Shown: positions 47,128-55,748, counted from the first letter of the whole stretch. The stretch: 63,757 nucleotides of DNA, filler included, from Reticulomyxa filosa (GCA_000512085.1; 19 parts of 19 records of this genome joined end to end with filler, not necessarily neighbours in it); one strand, 5' to 3'. Notes: generated by a model not told the origin, from the letters alone. Translations and numbers: made by a program.

Positions 47128-47998
47128 TGTATATCCATTACCACCAATCAAACCAATACTATTACTTTTATGATTATCGTTCTTGTTGTTATTATTACTT
47201 TGCAACGGTGAAATATCCAAACATCTAACAGTTCTTGTATGTCCATTGAAAATATTTAATGATTTAAACGTTTCAACATCCCATAAACGAATAGTTTTGT
47301 CATATGATCCAGAGCATAAATATCTACCGCCATTAAACGATGAAAATTCAATTCCACCAATCCACCCTGTGTGTTCATTGAGTACTTGGAACTGTTGATT
47401 ATATTTGGTATCCCAAAAACGAATGGTTTTATCAAATGACGAAGAACAAATAATAGTACGACGATTGTTATGATAATGATATTGTGAAAATTTCACACAA
47501 TACACATCACCTGCGTGCCCATCGAATGACCGAATTTGTTTGTTGTTATCAATATCCCATACACAAACTGTTCTATCTTTTGATCCAGAACAAATGAATT
47601 GACCATAATCAAATGTCAAATGGTCAATACTCATCACATCGTTTTTGTGTCCAGTGAAAGTCTTGAGTAATTTGGATGATGAACAAAATGCATCAAGCAT
47701 AAAAAAATTAGTTGCCTATATTAAATTATAAACAACAATGAATATTTGCCATTGAATAAACAAAAACTTAACATATTTAACAACAAGTTTGTCAAAATCT
47801 TGGATCCATCCTAATTTAATGTTCAATATTCGGATCCAATGTTGAATAATTGTTTGGGTCTCTTCTGGCTGGTTCAACCGTACACAATAAAAACATAAAC
47901 TTATCAGCCCCTTGAAAGATTGAAAAGAAGCTTACCAATGATAGTCGCATTGACATTTCTTTTTGTTTTTCCTTTTGAGATCTTTTCAGATGATGCAA
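47128..47998 (-). CDS. WD40 family gene, 5' part
   Basis: Exon EETQTIIQHWIRILNIKLGWIQDFDKLVVKY (47773-47865), intron 47716-47772, then WD repeats closely paralogous to 232-2034. Confidence 0.88.
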
Positions 47999-48399
47999 GA
48001 TGAAATGTTTGAACTTTTTTAGCTAAAATCAAGGAAGGAATGCCAAAAAACACAGACTAATTTTTCGTTTCCTTGTGAAGAAAATTAATTATCTCTATAA
48101 AGCATCATTTTAGATGTCATTTTCTTTGTATCCTACTGCATCTCATTTAAGAAAATTATCACCATATACTTTATTTCACTTTTCCACTTGTTTCTTTGTG
48201 TTGTTGTCATTTTTTTCTTTACTTTTTCTTTATTCGGTTTGTTATTGTGGAGTGATTGCTCAAGAGAGCAAAAGCCTTAGTATCATTTTGTGACGCAAGT
48301 TTTTCAGTAATAATCAAAATTAATGATGAATAATTCAAATAAATCTATTTTTCGTTCGTATTCTGTATTTTTAAACAAAAAAAAACACTAATAATCATC

Positions 48400-48843
48400 A
48401 TGTCTTCCATATCTGAGGAATCTGAAGTATTAGATGCCTTAATTCTTTCTTATTTGGATGATTTGGAAGGTAGTCCACAAGACTTGAGTGTGAATATTGA
48501 CTGGGGAGAGAGTAGTGCTAGTGAATTAGTACAAAAAACTCAAAGATTCTGTGACATTGAAAAATATATCACGAATGATACATTAATAATAAGTAGAGAA
48601 GATTTGACATTAGATATTATATTGGAATGGTCAAAAATAATATGGAAAGAATCAATAATTACAATATTGTGTGAAACATTAAATCAAGGTATAATTGGAA
48701 CAGATAATAAATTTAAGAAAAGAAAATTACAATATCAAATACCCACAAAAATGGAATGTATTACTATTATTCATTTAAAATTAAATTATTGTATATTTGA
48801 AGGAAAAGGTCTTTATTTCATAATCGGTGTATTCATACACTAG
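48400..48843 (+). CDS. Hypothetical protein (possibly a fragment)
   Basis: 147-aa ATG ORF in AT-rich DNA. No family recognised. Confidence 0.35.
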   Translation: MSSISEESEVLDALILSYLDDLEGSPQDLSVNIDWGESSASELVQKTQRFCDIEKYITNDTLIISREDLTLDIILEWSKIIWKESIITILCETLNQGIIGTDNKFKKRKLQYQIPTKMECITIIHLKLNYCIFEGKGLYFIIGVFIH

Positions 48844-49565
48844 ATTTAATTGGAATGACTCTTTCTAATTTCTTGATTTTGCTCATTCTCCAAATATTTT
48901 AAAAATTACATATCGATGATGCATCCAGTTTATAATGAAAGAATATCTTTTTTTGGTGGGATATGAGCGAGAAATCGCAATGTTCTTTGGGTTGCTTCGC
49001 TTCAGTTTGGTTCCAATTTTTTCCACTCTCCCTTTGAGCGTTATTAAGACTATTGTTGCAATGTTTATACAAACAAAAACTTTTTTTTTTTTGAAAGTAG
49101 AATTGCAAAGATCAATACACTACGAGGGTATATGCAAAAAAAAATCTAAAAAAATACAGTGTGGTAAACAAAAAAAAAAAGGGAGCTAGTAAACAAAAAA
49201 ATGTTACAACGTGCGTTTTTTTTTGGGGGGGGGGGGGGATGATTTTGAACTTTTGAAATTAGATTAAAGCTTAACTGAATGGATTTATTACACCGAGTAC
49301 AGAACAGGTATTCAATGGAAAGATGATCAGGTGCAGCCTCACTGGCATGATTACAGACAGTGAAGAAGGGTCTGAAGTAATTAATTGAGTATATTATTAT
49401 CCCGGATAAACGAAACCTGACGAAACTATAGGCTGGAATGAAACTACTGCCTAAGCCGTTGACAAAGACCAACTTAGATTCAATTGTCATTTCGTATCGT
49501 TTTGAAAGCCTCCCGATACAAACAATCTCGGACACGATGCTAAACATTTCATTTCCAATCGCAGA

Positions 49566-49844
49566 TGGGATTGTAGGGGACAATGATTTGCGGAGGGACG
49601 CTATGACGCGTGTAACAGCGCTTATAAATCTAGTATGGAACTGGAGAATGTTCTTCCAAATGTTACGCAAAGGATTAACGTTTTCAACTGACGCGAGCTG
49701 AATACCAGCGATCATTTTACGTGTTATCGTCGACAATCAGCATGCATCCTTTTCGACTGCTTCGTTTGTCGATGAAACAGATATCTGCGTGAGTGACGCA
49801 CTCCAACTAATTTTAGTCATGTCCCCCCCCGGCTGACAATACCA
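49566..49844 (+). ncRNA. Candidate structured RNA or inverted-repeat element
   Basis: The ends pair over about 20 nt with bulges. Internal stems GTGTAACA/TGTTACGC and AAAGGAT/ATCCTTT. Confidence 0.3.
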
Positions 49845-50302
49845 ATTACAACTTTCAAGCATTATTTGCATTTAAATGTACAATTTGTTGTTATTATTAT
49901 ATCTTTTTCTTGTGATATTGTCCAATAACAAACAATAAATTATATCAATCTAATGGTGTTGCAAAACTTTGCAAACTACAGAACTGTATGTGCTACACAA
50001 ATTACAACAATCTCATAATTACAATATCGCTGGCATTTGCCACAATCTCAAACATAATCGAGCGTGTCCACATTTGGCACAATCTTCAAAGGAAACATTA
50101 ATATTGGCATTACTTCATAAGTCAATGTGCGAATATATAAATCTAAAATTAAAAATAATTCAATCGACAATGCATGGACCAAATTTTTAGCTAATGATGA
50201 ACTGAATAATCTGCTAAACATATAATCAACTCAAAGTGTGTGTGAAAAAATATGTTTTGTTTTTTTTAATATAAAATAAATAACAATTTTTTTTTTTTCA
50301 AA

Positions 50303-50619
50303 GGTCAGCGGAGGGACTCGAACCCAATCTCCGCTACATTATAGTGAGCTGGAGCATTGCACGACCAACCACAATGTTGATATTGCTATCAACAATATAG
50401 CAAAGTCGTGTGCCAGTGTGTAGGCAAGGATGTACAAGACTCTGCGACTTAGTGCGAATACATCCAAGACGCACCCCAACACACTGGCCAGCCTATCAAC
50501 CCTTTTGAGGTTGAACCACCTCCAAGAAGTTCCGAAGAACTTCACAAAGATGGCTGGCCCTAATGCAGCCATGGTCACTATAAATTCAGCGGGCTTTACA
50601 TATTAAGCTACGCCGCCGA
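50303..50619 (-). ncRNA. tRNA-scaffolded structured ncRNA with a ~240-nt insert replacing the anticodon loop
   Basis: Acceptor stem, D arm GCTT-AATATGTA-AAGC, stem CCGCTG/TAGCGG and T arm GGG-TTCGAGT-CCC (B box). The insert is closed by TATAGTGA/TCACTATA and contains UUCG and GCAA tetraloop hairpins plus a pseudoknot. Confidence 0.8.
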
Positions 50620-50902
50620 ATTAGTTAATATTGGCCATTTGCATTTCCTCCCCACCCCCCCCCCCCCCCACACTTCCATCACAATAAGAAATTTTATAAA
50701 AATTAAAAAACACACAATAGTCCGACTCCGAAGCGTTTTTTCGGAGTTAAATAAAAAAAAGGTGCGAAAACAAAACTTTTTCGTCATACGTCCGGCAGCA
50801 GAATAGTGAAAGTTGCAGAGCCTGTATTCAAATCAAACAAAACGTTTTTTTTTCAACATTGTTCAAAGCATGAAAAATGTTGGACTTGTTGTTCTTCGGC
50901 TT

Positions 50903-50944
50903 AAGTCCGAAATGATAAAGTCAAGTCCGAAATGATAAAGTCAA
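50903..50944. repeat. Exact 20-bp tandem duplication AAGTCCGAAATGATAAAGTC
   Basis: Two adjacent identical copies. Confidence 0.9.
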
Positions 50945-51658
50945 ACAAATAAAAATGCACTTAACTTTTACTTTCTTTATTGGGAATCAATAAAGAAAGG
51001 AATTTGAAAAAAAAAATAAACAGTAAACAACAACAAAAAAAAGGGCAATCAAAACTTTGCTCACAACTTAAAAATTTTATTTCATCTTTTTTTTGAATTG
51101 ATTTATTCTGCACTTAACTACAACCAATCTTAAGTAAAAAACTATATTTTATTATCTAGAAATTATTGAACAAAACTTAATTTAATTGCAAAAACTATTG
51201 AAAAAAATTACAGCAGCTATTTATTCTTAATAGTAATGTTTGATTATGGAAAATATGACTTTGCAAGCATACATGAATTTGATAGTTGTATTTTCCATTT
51301 ATTTGTAATATTTTTCATTTATTTGAATTGTTGCCATTCAACATTTAATTAGTCATCACAAAAAAAAATTAACAATTGTGCAATGATAACAAATATGCGC
51401 TTCAAATTTGTTTAATTTTATTTACTAAAGCTTGATCACTGATTTTTTCATTTATTGATTTCTATTTTGAGAGATAACTCTACTGAAGACTTACACAAAG
51501 TGTAATAAGAAAATAGTGCTTTCGAGTAATTTTAAAAAAGAAATGAGATGACAAAGGTAAGGACAAGAAGAAAAAGAGAGTGAAAGAGTTAAAAGAAGTA
51601 ACTAAGTTTTTTTAACAAAGGACTCTATTTCTTTGAGTTTCGCTGTTGCTAGAGTAAC

Positions 51659-51877
51659 TTGTACTACAATGTTGATTTTGCTTGTTTCATGGGAAAAAAA
51701 CAAACAATTGTGTCGTGTTCAAGTGATAATACTATTCGATTGTGGAATGTAGAATCAAGAAAAGAAATGCAAACGTTGAATGGGCATTTACATGCTGTAA
51801 AATGTATAAATATTTCTCCAAATGGAAATACAATGATAACAGGCTCTGCTGATTGTGAAATTCGAATTTGGGGATAA
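51659..51877 (+). pseudogene. Isolated C-terminal WD40 fragment
   Basis: IVSCSSDNTIRLWN...GH...ISPNGNTMITGSADCEIRIWG*, with no upstream repeats. Confidence 0.75.
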
Positions 51878-53265
51878 AAATATATACATAAACAATAAAT
51901 GCTTTTGAATAATTTCTGAAGTGAATTTGTGTAAAAAAGAAATGCACACTAATATGTTGAACTTTTAGTTTTTTAAATAAATTCATAGCCCATTTTCTTC
52001 TTGGCAACGTATAACTTTCGTAATGCAAATGAAAAATTGTTTTATTTTTGGATTTAACTATAAAAGTAGAAAACACCAAGAAGTGTTGTTGATTTTTATC
52101 GAAAATTTTTGCTTCTAAATGAATAAAGAACAGTATATTTATTCAATTGATTTGTATATTTGATCAAATACTTTTGTAAAATGTTGCCAATTTATGAAAT
52201 TTACTTACGTCCATTTTTAAAAATTTTTTGAGTGATTGCAGAATAAAATGTGCTTCATATGATATTGATTAACAATAATTATTAATTTTGAATATCAAAG
52301 ATATAATTTGGTCACAATCGAGAAAATATTGCAGCTAGAAGTAGATGTCTGTAATAATACTCGGCTTCCACTTTTATCTGTTCCAATTCATTTTTTTCTT
52401 ATTTTGACGTATGATCAAAATAAAAAAATGAAAAAATTGTCATCTATCTACTTTTTGTGGATCATCACTTTTATTTTCATTTAAACAAATTTGAATGCTT
52501 GCGTTGTTTATATTGCCATTCTCCTTTTTGTTTAAAAAATCTAAAATTGGAAAAGATAAATTTAATGAAATTTCACTACAGATAAAGGTTCAGAAATGAG
52601 TACATAAACAACACATTTTTTTTACAAATTGCTTGTCTTTGAAACCAAAATTACATTTAATTTGTAATTCATTGAATTGATGTATTTGAGGAAATATCAA
52701 CAAGCTTTTATAAACGTTAATTGAAGCAATTTTCAAAAAGTAATCATGCAGTCTACTTGTTGTTATATTTTGCATTTTATATTAGAAATTAAAACTTTTT
52801 CCGAGTGTTTTTGTTTTAAAAACGTTTTTACGAGTTAACGTTTTTATTAAATTTTTAGAATACTCCAATTTTTTTGGAGTAGAAAATTTGACAAAAATTC
52901 TACTTTTATAAAATATTGTTATTACCAAAGAACAAGATAATTGCATAAGACAAATTATTTCATGCGAATATTATCTATTTTTTAAATTAATTGAATAAAT
53001 TAATGGTCACATAAAAACGTTTTATATCATATAACAACATCAAAATTTGTTGGATAAGAAAATAAAAAAGTGCAACTCAAGTGCTTAGTTTCGAGCATAG
53101 AAGACACTTAGTTTTATAATTGAATTTTCTCGTAGTATTTTCGCTTGTTTTTCAAACTGAAATGTACATTATTCGTTTAGTGTTATGTATAATTTTGTGA
53201 AAGTTGATCCTAAGTGTATTAAAGAAAATCTCAAAACCTTTTTTATTTCATCTTAATATCATTTA

Positions 53266-53514
53266 TTGGAGTCCATTAATTTCATCATTGAAACATTGAG
53301 ATATATGAACATAGATGGAAACGTATGTGTTGTCGATTGTAAATTACAATGTGAAGGAAAAGTATCCATTACAACGCAGTTATTTGTTACAAAGAATGCA
53401 ATTATTGATCAGCAGTTGAAACAATCTATTTCTCCAATTCAATGGAATAGCAAGATACATTATGATATTCCAATGAGACTCCAAGATCTCGAATATAAAG
53501 CAGAAGAAAGTTGA
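53266..53514 (+). pseudogene. Fragment of a lineage-expanded family (recalled as the N-terminus of TPR proteins)
   Basis: IDGNV...CKLQCEG...ITTQLFVTKNAIIDQQL...PIQWNSKIHYDIP ends at a stop with no continuation. The family assignment is from memory only. Confidence 0.4.
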
Positions 53515-55748
53515 AATAAAAAATTGCTCAACAAATCTCTTATTTTTTGCAAACGTATTTATAAAAAATTTTTACAAAAGAGAAGATGGATAAAAAAAAG
53601 ACATTTGCTACAATTAATTTTAAAATTAAATCGCGAAGGAAAATTAAAGTATTATACAAAAAATTAATTTTGCCAAATACATTATTTATTAAATCCATAC
53701 AAAAACAATAACTATGCAAATAAAATTGTAATTTCTTTTTTTGATTGTATTAAAGGGAGTTTTTTCAAAGAAGAGTTGGAAGCATTCACCTTAAACAAAA
53801 AAATCTTGAGTGCTTAATGGAATGTCTTCAAGAATCATTCAATACAATTGAAAAGAAATTGCTTCAAAGACATGGAATTTGTGTAAGTGAAGCATTCACA
53901 AAGCAACTATGGTCTGGGTTCCACCGTAGAAAACAAGTTAAAACTAATACAATGCAAATCAATAAAATTGTTCAGATATCATTTTTCTTAAATAAATACG
54001 TCATTATAGAATAACTTATCAATGACAACTATGTTTAATGGATTTATTGGGAGCATTCGGGTTGATCTTTTTTTTGACATTTGATACTTTTGAGAAAGCA
54101 GAAATATATGAAGTTGATTTTGTGATAATAATAAACACATTTATTTTATTGGAAAATGAAATGCATATAACTGTTTAGTATCTAAAGATGTTGTTCAATG
54201 TTTTCCAAAATAACATTGTCATGGAAATCAATAGATCTAAACATACAATATTCAAGCATTTCATGTAATTCAATAATACTCTGAAGTTGGAAGATCAAGT
54301 ATTTAATTACTTTCTTTACAAAATAATGGTTTGCAAAGTTGTACAAACAGACTTAAAGAACAAAATTTTTCTTTTTTGTAGCTGTCATATAGTATTTTGC
54401 AAACAAAGGGCAAAATCTATGAATTATTTGAACAATGAAATTATGCATTTGTTTATAATAAACAACTAAAAACAGCAAATGAAGGAAATTATTTCTCTCT
54501 ATTTATGGAAGCATTTTTTCCAAAAATATTCAAATGAAAAGACAAAAACAACAACTCTCAAAAGTACAATTGCCATTTCACAATAAAAAAGATTGAGAAT
54601 ATTATTAAAGGATAAGTTTGGACTTTAAGGTTCCTTCAATTTGTATTTTTTAAAATATTTTGCATATAGTCCTGCTTTGTTTTTTTTCTCTGTTAATCAA
54701 AACGTGTGAAAGAAATTACAACAAGTATTCAAGATATATTGCAAAGGTTTATTTAGATTTAATAAATAGAAATTTTCTTAAATCTTTCCAAAGAGTGCAT
54801 CTGCCAACTATGTTTTCTTTTTCATAGAAAAAAATTCTGCATTACTATTTTTGGTTGAATTACATAATTTCGACAAAGAAAACAAGATGAAAGAGTTTGA
54901 TTTTATATTTTATATTATTTACATTAGCATTTCTGAATAATAGAAAAGGAGAAACTTTGTATTCTGTTATTTTTTTTATAGATAACAACAAATGGTAATT
55001 ATACACGGGAATGCTTGAAATATTTTTTATATTGTATCCAAATGATAACGCACATGATCATATAAAACAAATAAGAGATTGAAACGTTGATTTGGTTATT
55101 TGGAGATTCATCGCCGAAGAAGAACCGTAAGAAAAAATACAGCATCATTGTAAAATATTGAAGATGATTAAAGGCCTTGTCCAACAATCAATTGAAAAAG
55201 ATGTATTTAAATAACAAAAAAAAAGTTAATTTTGTCAATGTTGGAATATGTTATTATTTTAAAGAACAAATTAGAATCAAAAATCAAAACTAATAAATTG
55301 AAGAACGCAGGCAAAGCAATAATCAATTTAAAAACAAAGAACAAAACATATTTAAAATTATAAAAGCTGTGTTAAATTATACTCTTCGTTTCAACATCGA
55401 TATTCCTTTTTTGTTTTCAAACATTTTTCAAAAATTGCAAAACACTATTTTCAAAGTTTCTGGTGAAAACCTTTTGAAAAAAAACTTGTGGATACGTGCG
55501 TACTCAGTTTTGAATAAATTTTTAAAAAATTTCTTGTCATTGAAAAAAANNNNNNNNNNNNNNNNNNNNNNNNNNNNNNNNNNNNNNNNNNNNTTAATTA
55601 ATTAANNNNNNNNNNNNNNNNNNNNNNNNNNNNNNNNNNNNNNNNNNNNTTTTTTTTTTAATTTATTTTTTTAAAAAAAAAAAAAAAAAAAAACCCAGTC
55701 AAAAAAAAAATTTTAAAAAATAACAATGATAGAAATAAAAATAAAAAG

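Follow-up and report, generated by a model that had tools for sequence, protein, structure and literature searches.

The DNA analysed here, referred to as the window, is a stretch of 63,757 nucleotides from the foraminiferan Reticulomyxa filosa (GCA_000512085.1), in which positions 47128-55549 correspond to the complete 8422 bp contig ASPP01002691.1. Three genes are annotated on this contig, at window positions 47230-48210, 48400-48843 and 54038-54940, and a WD-repeat ORF, whose product is 100% identical to an R. filosa protein, is situated at the contig edge. An element of 317 nt lies on the minus strand at 50303-50619, outside the annotated genes and inside an unannotated intergenic stretch of 5 kb; all of the features described below are on this strand, and element positions (el) are numbered such that el position p is window position 50620-p. 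The element forms a GC island, with a GC content of 46% relative to 22-30% for the surrounding intergenic DNA and about 28% for the genome as a whole, and such islands are typical of non-coding RNA genes in AT-rich genomes. The context is nuclear and eukaryotic. We considered a NUMT or other mitochondrial origin, and this is unlikely because tRNA genes are absent from retarian mitochondrial genomes (PMC10127745).

The element is composed of a tRNA-like shell and a structured insert, and its predicted folding is unusually stable. The minimum free energy (MFE) of the whole element is -134.4 kcal/mol, as compared to -97.0 +/- 4.8 kcal/mol for dinucleotide shuffles (z -7.72), and none of 100 shuffles folds as well; this comparison, which the first-pass annotation had named as a check on its proposal, places the fold far beyond chance. 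Computed separately, z is -7.8 for the insert, -3.6, -3.0 and -6.3 for its domains i, ii and iii, and about -2.1 for each half of the frame, and in a scan of the whole contig in 160-nt steps of view, the lowest z of all, and three of the lowest five, fall over the element. The two strands are not equivalent. The opposite strand of the whole element folds at -107.2 kcal/mol, 27 worse, and the insert by itself has an MFE of -106.3 in the minus sense and -83.1 in the plus sense, a gap of 23 kcal/mol; it is on the strand with the better fold that the tRNA frame and the B box read correctly. This strand asymmetry, taken with the G.U pairs of the fold, is expected under selection at the RNA level and not from a DNA palindrome. 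We regard the observation itself, that of a structured and tRNA-framed element, as confirmed and statistically robust.

The shell is a genuine tRNA-like frame, and all of the motifs listed for it and for the insert in the first-pass annotation were recovered on the minus strand at their reported coordinates. The 5' acceptor strand UCGGCGG (el 1-7, 50613-50619) has two potential partners, el 309-315 and el 28-34, and in the computed acceptor pairing it is matched with CCGCUGA (el 309-315, 50305-50311), which is followed by CC. This UCGGCGG/CCGCUGA pairing, with a G.U at pair 3, stands as originally described, but the alternative register put forward with it, GGCGGCG/CGCUGAC, contains a G.A mismatch; the register preferred by ARAGORN starts at el 3. 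The acceptor can be drawn either with six of seven positions paired, because of the G.A mismatch, or with all seven paired but separated from the D stem by 4 nt instead of 2. The D arm, GCUU-AAUAUGUA-AAGC (50593-50608), has no G18G19 in its loop, and an A-box-like sequence in this region, TAGCTTAATAT, starts at 50610 and matches the TRGCNNA part of the consensus but not the GTGG part. An anticodon-type stem of 6 bp is formed by CCGCUG (el 28-33, 50587-50592) and UAGCGG (el 284-289, 50331-50336). On its 5' side, 4 nt of internal loop (AAUU, 50583-50586) abut the next helix, and together with the first bases of that helix these read UUUAUA, which is what remains of an anticodon loop of the Ile-UAU type. 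On the 3' side, a 3-nt bulge, AUG (50337-50339), separates the stem from helix P-a of the insert, and it occupies the position of the 3' splice-site bulge of eukaryotic pre-tRNAs, for which the rule is a bulge of 3 nt together with an anticodon-intron helix (PMC6614914).

The 3' portion of the shell combines an intact promoter element with a defective stem. The T arm, UUGGG-UUCGAGU-CCCUC (50311-50327), contains a perfect B box, GGTTCGAGTCC (50314-50324), which matches the consensus for a T loop and B box, and only three Watson-Crick pairs, with mismatches at U49.C65 and U50.U64. The distance from A box to B box is about 285 nt, far above the usual spacing. The element is followed by UUUG and a run of 12 A residues (trailer 50287-50302, with the A12 run at 50287-50298), such that its 3' end reads ACC-UUUG and CCA is not encoded; there is no T4+ terminator directly 3' of the element, and the first run of four T residues on the same strand is about 30 nt further downstream. 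The anatomy fits the proposal in the first-pass annotation that the shell could act as a promoter or processing scaffold for a cargo.

The heptamer CCGCUGA is present twice in the element (el 28-34 and el 309-315), and because of this duplication, and the mutual complementarity of the four terminal strands, the unconstrained MFE structure has two terminal hairpins in place of a cloverleaf. The cloverleaf-type frame, enforced through the anticodon-type stem, has an energy of -133.3 kcal/mol, only 1.1 above the unconstrained MFE. With a T stem of 3 bp, no G18G19, and no acceptor register that offers both full pairing and normal spacing, the shell cannot be regarded as a canonical tRNA in working order; the first-pass annotation had likewise set aside a canonical tRNA, on the basis of the short T stem. 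On the genomic sequence ARAGORN reports no tRNA genes in its default, -i, or -i0,400 modes, and the Rfam tRNA model has no match to the genomic element (391 nt) at E<=10. A tRNA-Trp with a 231-nt intron, which ARAGORN offers at -ps80, was rejected as one of 15 junk-level calls and for its poor anticodon stem.

Removal of the insert changes this outcome. In a deletion series that took out each possible segment running from el 27-60 to el 254-291 (1258 constructs, ARAGORN default threshold), 18 constructs are called as tRNAs, with Ile-tat, Leu-taa, and Ile-aat identities, whereas the identical procedure yields no call in any of 250 windows of 347 nt taken at random from R. filosa contigs; with these calls and the intact B box, the tRNA frame that had been proposed is borne out. 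The best-behaved construct joins el 37-41 to el 277-281 and has the loop UUUAUAA, with U33, the anticodon UAU, and A37, as would result if a gene of the tRNA-Ile(UAU) type had received an insertion at its canonical intron site, 37/38. Genes for tRNA-Ile(UAU) often contain introns. One configuration that we considered is a working tRNA that decodes with UAU (or as Lys-UUU, by strict ruler counting) and that carries an intron of about 240 nt, a record length, simply as baggage to be removed by the tRNA splicing endonuclease. Removal of el 42-280 leaves the 7-nt loop of a tRNA that ARAGORN names Ile(tat), the insert sits at the 37/38 site, the predicted precursor pairs its anticodon region with the 3'-terminal part of the insert, and the 3-nt bulge adjoins the anticodon stem on the 3' side. 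However, the UUUAUAA loop demands a 7-bp anticodon stem with an A.G mismatch, and a stem of 5 bp gives either an 11-nt loop or A33. The 5' splice geometry is also not similar to a bulge-helix-bulge (BHB), in that the expected cut falls within a stable 8-bp helix and there are four additional unpaired nucleotides on the 5' side. Together with the defects of the T stem, D loop, and acceptor, and the failure of both ARAGORN -i and the Rfam tRNA model to detect the gene, this makes a decoding tRNA improbable. The earlier suggestion that a giant intron lies in a gene similar to tRNA-Ile(TAT) is retained as the best account of the origin of the frame, since a cut at 37/38 yields UUUAUAA, but the product of splicing would still be non-canonical as a tRNA.

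The structured insert spans 243 nt (el 38-280, 50340-50582) and consists of a long irregular helix that leads to a four-way junction, with 180 of the 243 nt paired in the minus-sense fold, including 13 G.U pairs. The arm between the anticodon-type stem and the junction has about 25 bp and is irregular but almost continuously paired, and comprises in order an A-U and a U-A pair in the loop, a helix of 8-9 bp, a C-G pair, UGG/CCA, and GCAUU/AAUGC. The first helix, P-a, is formed by UAUAGUGA (50575-50582) and UCACUAUA (50340-50347) with pair probabilities of 0.94-1.0, and the last, P-b, by GCAUU (50562-50566) and AAUGC (50354-50358) with probabilities of 0.81-0.96. P-b closes the four-way junction, which is compact, with linkers of 0-3 nt, and from which three domains emerge. 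Domain i (50488-50561) is a three-way junction that contains a cUUCGg hairpin (50526-50543) and the hairpin UCAACCU-CAAAA-GGGUUGA (50496-50514), with probabilities of 0.7-1.0 that are mostly 1.0. The sequences of the 8-bp helix GGCCAGCC/GGCUGGCC previously assigned to this domain are present, but the helix shares two C residues with the 9-bp helix CCAGUGUGU/ACACACUGG, and the two are mutually exclusive at full length; the ensemble retains the 9-bp CCAGUGUGU/ACACACUGG helix, and domain i is closed by GGCC/GGCU together with a G.U-rich helix of 9 bp. Domain iii (50359-50412) is the best defined of the three, with pair probabilities of 0.96-1.0, and is built from CACGAC/GUCGUG, a middle helix rich in G.U pairs, and an 8-bp hairpin capped by GCAA (50375-50394). 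Both of the 4-nt terminal loops in domains i and iii are thus of special stable classes (cUUCGg and GCAA).

Domain ii (50413-50487) has an outer helix of 9 bp and an ambiguous interior. The components of the H-type pseudoknot proposed here were all recomputed, including GGUGCG/CGCACU, GGAUGUA (50465-50459), and UACAUCC (50434-50428), as were CACGAC/GUCGUG of domain iii and the A12 run that follows UUUG. Stem S1 would pair 50470-50475 with 50451-50456, and S2 would pair 50459-50465 with 50428-50434, with stacks of -11.7 and -12.9 kcal/mol respectively as compared to -13.1 for the nested alternative; the loops of 4, 2, and 16 nt are geometrically feasible. The pairing segments are present and compatible in space, and the pseudoknot keeps the status of a candidate. 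The probabilities in the nested ensemble are 0.23 for S2 and 0 for S1. In this modelling it is plausible, being sterically sound and energetically comparable with the nested fold once a knot penalty is applied.

Searches against known families place the element in none of them. The Rfam set of 4227 families, which includes tmRNA, SRP, RNase P/MRP, Intron_gpI, and small ribozymes, gives no matches at E<=1 across the 8.4-kb piece, and at E<=10 on 391 nt gives only chance-level matches (E 0.09-5), which are to a fragment of a pestivirus IRES, an H/ACA snoRNA, and, in the incorrect orientation, a C/D snoRNA. ARAGORN in its tRNA, intron, tmRNA (-m), and mitochondrial modes makes no default call at the locus, and on inspection we rejected SRP RNA, RNase P/MRP RNA, telomerase RNA, box C/D and H/ACA snoRNAs, and the hammerhead. 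A group I intron was similarly set aside, there being no RF00028 match (E<=10) and, on inspection, no guide complementary to the end of the 5' exon within the ~30 nt with which the insert begins. Metagenome contigs were scanned for exact patterns from the insert core and from the 5' frame, and viral contigs were scanned twice in this way, with no match in either, and our literature search returned no work on tRNA introns or tRNA-like RNAs of foraminifera.

A scan of prokaryotic genomes did return one resemblance. The 3' 21 nt of the element are identical in three alphaproteobacterial tRNA-Arg(CCT) genes and in two orphan fragments of tRNA 3' ends, and these tRNA-Arg(CCT) genes also have the U50.U64 mismatch and agree with the element at about 18 of 27 positions in the 5' half, with an unrelated anticodon arm. 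The flanks of the element are eukaryotic, and we take the match to reflect a resemblance of frame, without reading transfer into it. In some bacteria tRNA-Arg(CCT) genes are hosts to group I introns, and the match can be added to the arguments for an RNA of the trans-translation type similar to tmRNA, or for a very divergent member of a known family (SRP, RNase P/MRP, or group I intron), along with the tRNA-like ends, the G3.U70 pair available in one register, the long helix in place of the anticodon loop, and the one candidate pseudoknot. The tmRNA-like architecture seen in the first-pass annotation does not survive beyond a topological analogy, as ARAGORN -m and the Rfam tmRNA models are both negative, and nothing meaningful is found at E<=10 on the 391 nt among the other families. 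Moreover, nearly all of the fold is nested, and it offers neither a tag frame in single-stranded form nor conserved catalytic-core joiners nor P1/guide pairing, and the context is nuclear and eukaryotic in a lineage whose mitochondrial genomes are without tRNA genes (PMC10127745). Assignment to tmRNA or a divergent known family is very improbable.

A 77-codon ORF beginning with ATG in an ACCATGG context (50342-50572) covers nearly the whole insert and would encode a hydrophobic peptide, and a small protein gene with this Kozak-like start could in principle account for the locus. It does not look coding, however, as judged from its composition and its relatives. Its GC3 is 0.58, relative to 0.19-0.25 in R. 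filosa genes, and its CAI-like score is 0.33, relative to 0.64-0.76, and not above that of other frames. The ORF is unannotated, has no relatives in a word-indexed set of 5.8 billion proteins or, with HMMER, among 1.84 billion representatives, and belongs to no Pfam family, and RNA structure as extreme as that observed is uncommon in coding sequence. We consider a protein-coding explanation to be extremely improbable.

The main rival to a functional RNA is a dead tRNA gene into which an element has inserted, for example a non-autonomous copy of a transposon directed at tRNA anticodon arms or a hairpin-forming repeat; nothing at the locus would then be functional, and the structure would derive from palindromes of the inserted element. 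The shell has the appearance of a pseudogene, with its 3-bp T stem, its missing G18G19, its acceptor that has either a G.A mismatch or the wrong spacing, and changes in the direction of A/T, and it is without a proper terminator. Insertions of this type have precedent, as in animals there are DNA transposons whose insertion is specific to the surroundings of the tRNA anticodon loop, and Dada families directed at tRNA genes (nucleotides 8-13) are reported from one protist, Perkinsus (PMC8869645). The insert termini moreover constitute an imperfect inverted repeat, TATAGTGA...TCACTATA, the insert is flanked by an imperfect direct repeat of 7 nt (TATAGTG/TATAATG), and the near-perfect helices would fit a young insertion. 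Against this, no clean target-site duplication of 6-7 bp is present around the insert, and none of any kind is visible around the element. A second copy, a tRNA gene, or a perfect B box is likewise absent from 76 kb of R. filosa DNA in nine further contigs, although this sample rules out only repeats of several thousand copies or more; within that limit, the SINE alternative of the first-pass annotation gains no support. The insert also consists of local hairpins around a tight four-way junction and is not a single foldback, the B box is untouched, and the strand asymmetry of 23-27 kcal/mol, the G.U pairs, and the stable tetraloops all speak for RNA-level selection acting on the strand of the tRNA. 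On balance we think it unlikely that the locus is a dead gene with an insertion.

We tentatively favor a model in which the element is a tRNA-derived Pol III gene whose shell serves as promoter and provides end processing for a selected structured RNA module, and we would place this somewhat short of an even chance. The parent was most likely an intron-bearing tRNA gene, as the UUUAUA|A loop remnant of the Ile-UAU type suggests, and the anticodon-loop insertion would have become an autonomous and selected RNA module of about 240 nt. The intact B box and partial A box would recruit TFIIIC and Pol III, and RNase P and RNase Z could define the ends by way of the acceptor/T minihelix. The anticodon-type stem and the irregular helix of ~25 bp would then hold out the compact four-way junction with its three domains, and this junction would be the functional cargo. 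The cargo may be retained in a chimeric RNA of ~317 nt, or it may be excised by the tRNA splicing endonuclease in a linear or circular form, the latter in the manner of tricRNAs (PMC4536317). We infer from the single sequence at hand that the element is transcribed and processed, and any function assigned to it is similarly provisional.

The distribution of sequence changes is one reason for preferring this model of a tRNA-derived gene with a selected insert. Those parts that serve only decoding, namely the elbow contacts with G18G19, two T-stem pairs, and the geometry of the anticodon stem, have degraded, largely through changes toward A/T, whereas all helices of the GC-rich insert are intact, as are the D stem, the B box, and the pairings at the termini, in a genome that is ~28% GC. 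This decay pattern, with the strand-asymmetric fold and the tetraloops, suggests that constraint acts on the insert, on the promoter, and on the minihelix that defines the ends, and not on decoding. The geometry at the 3' splice position, the small energy cost of the cloverleaf-type frame, the GC island, the tRNA calls after deletion of the insert, and the non-coding character of the ORF also count in favor of the model. Several observations count against the model. It draws on a single locus, for which the searches above returned neither a homologue nor a paralogue; there is no T4+ terminator directly 3', the A-B box gap is ~285 nt, and the 5' site is not BHB-like; and helices that are almost perfect could equally mean a recent insertion as long-term selection.

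The more specific proposition, that the element represents a natural tRNA-scaffolded RNA in Foraminifera, in which a degenerate shell, used as a Pol III promoter and as a handle for RNase P/Z and possibly the splicing endonuclease, makes a ~240-nt RNA of a new family that is chimeric (~317 nt) or excised, possibly circular, and has its own function, is possible but rather unlikely. We know of essentially no exploration of foraminiferal non-coding RNAs, and the element, provided that it is both transcribed and conserved, would constitute a new structured RNA family from this group, and would be to the engineered tRNA-scaffold and tricRNA expression systems what a natural equivalent is to a designed one. 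Under that condition it would further extend several-fold the known size and complexity of insertions tolerated by a tRNA frame, and would offer an example of a tRNA gene whose selected product has moved from the exons to the insert. If it is instead a dead tRNA gene with an insertion, then it is an ordinary genomic relic.

Comparison with known systems shows partial similarities to several of them. Those bacterial tRNA genes that contain a group I intron (tRNA-Arg(CCU), Ile(CAU), and Leu(UAA)) likewise have a structured anticodon-loop insert of ~240 nt, and the last 21 nt of the frame are those of alphaproteobacterial tRNA-Arg(CCT), but the element has no Intron_gpI match, P3-P7 core, or P1/guide pairing, its anticodon arm is unrelated, and its locus is eukaryotic and intergenic. 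With tmRNA (SsrA) the element has in common its tRNA-like ends, G3.U70 in one register, a long helix in place of the anticodon loop, and a possible pseudoknot; it differs in having a D stem and an anticodon-type stem, at most one pseudoknot, no single-stranded tag frame or encoded CCA, and a nuclear eukaryotic location. The tRNA-derived SINEs and BC1-type non-coding RNAs are similar in their tRNA descent, their B box, the A-rich tract just downstream, and a 5' tRNA part that is able to refold into a hairpin. In those RNAs, however, the tRNA portion is a 5' head, whereas the tRNA halves of the element are split around its body, and unlike SINEs it is without target-site duplications or copies in the 76 kb sampled. 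Interruption of tRNA genes by Dada also places foreign DNA in the anticodon arm and is accompanied by decay of the disrupted gene, but the element has neither a transposase nor a clean 6-7-bp duplication, and has a strand-asymmetric RNA structure with stable tetraloops.

The closest parallels are with the intron-bearing and tricRNA-producing tRNA genes, such as those for tRNA-Ile(UAU) and Drosophila tRNA-Tyr. There are differences, in that tRNA introns are usually about 10-110 nt long and the insert here is ~240 nt, with an independent four-way-junction fold and no BHB-like bulge on the 5' side, and in that the tRNA body is non-canonical, which makes it unlikely that selection is for the exons as the product. 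Nonetheless, the element resembles these genes in having its insertion at the anticodon loop, in the pairing between the anticodon and the 3' end of the insert, in the 3-nt bulge on the 3' side, and in its internal Pol III promoter elements, and if the insert is excised it could, as with the products of tricRNA genes, be a stable RNA.

The heptamer CCGCTGA is present twice in the tRNA-like shell of the 317-nt element (window positions 50586-50592 and 50305-50311, minus strand), and as a consequence two folds are open to the ends of the element, a cloverleaf-type frame and a pair of separate hairpins, which lie within about 1 kcal/mol of each other. The doubling could reflect chance, the trace of a duplication, or a conformational switch.

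The upstream flank contains a run of 15 G residues (50655-50669, minus strand), which TRF reports for the plus strand as a C tract of 20 nt, and this run is followed by an octamer-like motif, ATGCAAAT, within the region 17-50 nt upstream of the element (50636-50669, minus strand). A TTTATAAAA stretch lies approximately 75 nt upstream. These features may be promoter-related, or may merely be homopolymer-rich intergenic DNA.

Elsewhere on the contig, the segment at 50888-51047 has a z score of -5.8 on the minus strand in the sliding 160-nt scan of folding against shuffled sequence, but only -2.9 over 221 nt; it includes a perfect 20-nt tandem repeat of 2.1 copies (50903-50944) adjoined by an AT-rich, perfect 12 bp hairpin. 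An unannotated 72-residue ORF (51659-51877, plus strand) encodes part of a WD40 repeat protein (Pfam WD40, 1e-16). It probably represents either a fragment of a gene or an exon missed in annotation, belonging to the WD-repeat family, which is hugely expanded in R. filosa. A second, milder rise in GC content (40-44%) at 49146-49736 (minus strand) holds a 196-residue ORF for which searches of Pfam and of the protein collection gave no family and no homologue, respectively.

In the prokaryotic genome collection, the last 21 nt of the element recur in orphan tRNA 3'-end fragments on a Faecousia contig (L009:1438-1458) and a Nonomuraea contig (L010:7418-7438), which are possibly integration-site remnants. 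The same 21 nt, encompassing the U50.U64 T-stem mismatch, are common to the element and alphaproteobacterial tRNA-Arg(CCT) genes (L006:4822-4898, L007:1844-1920, and L008:1127-1203, all minus strand).
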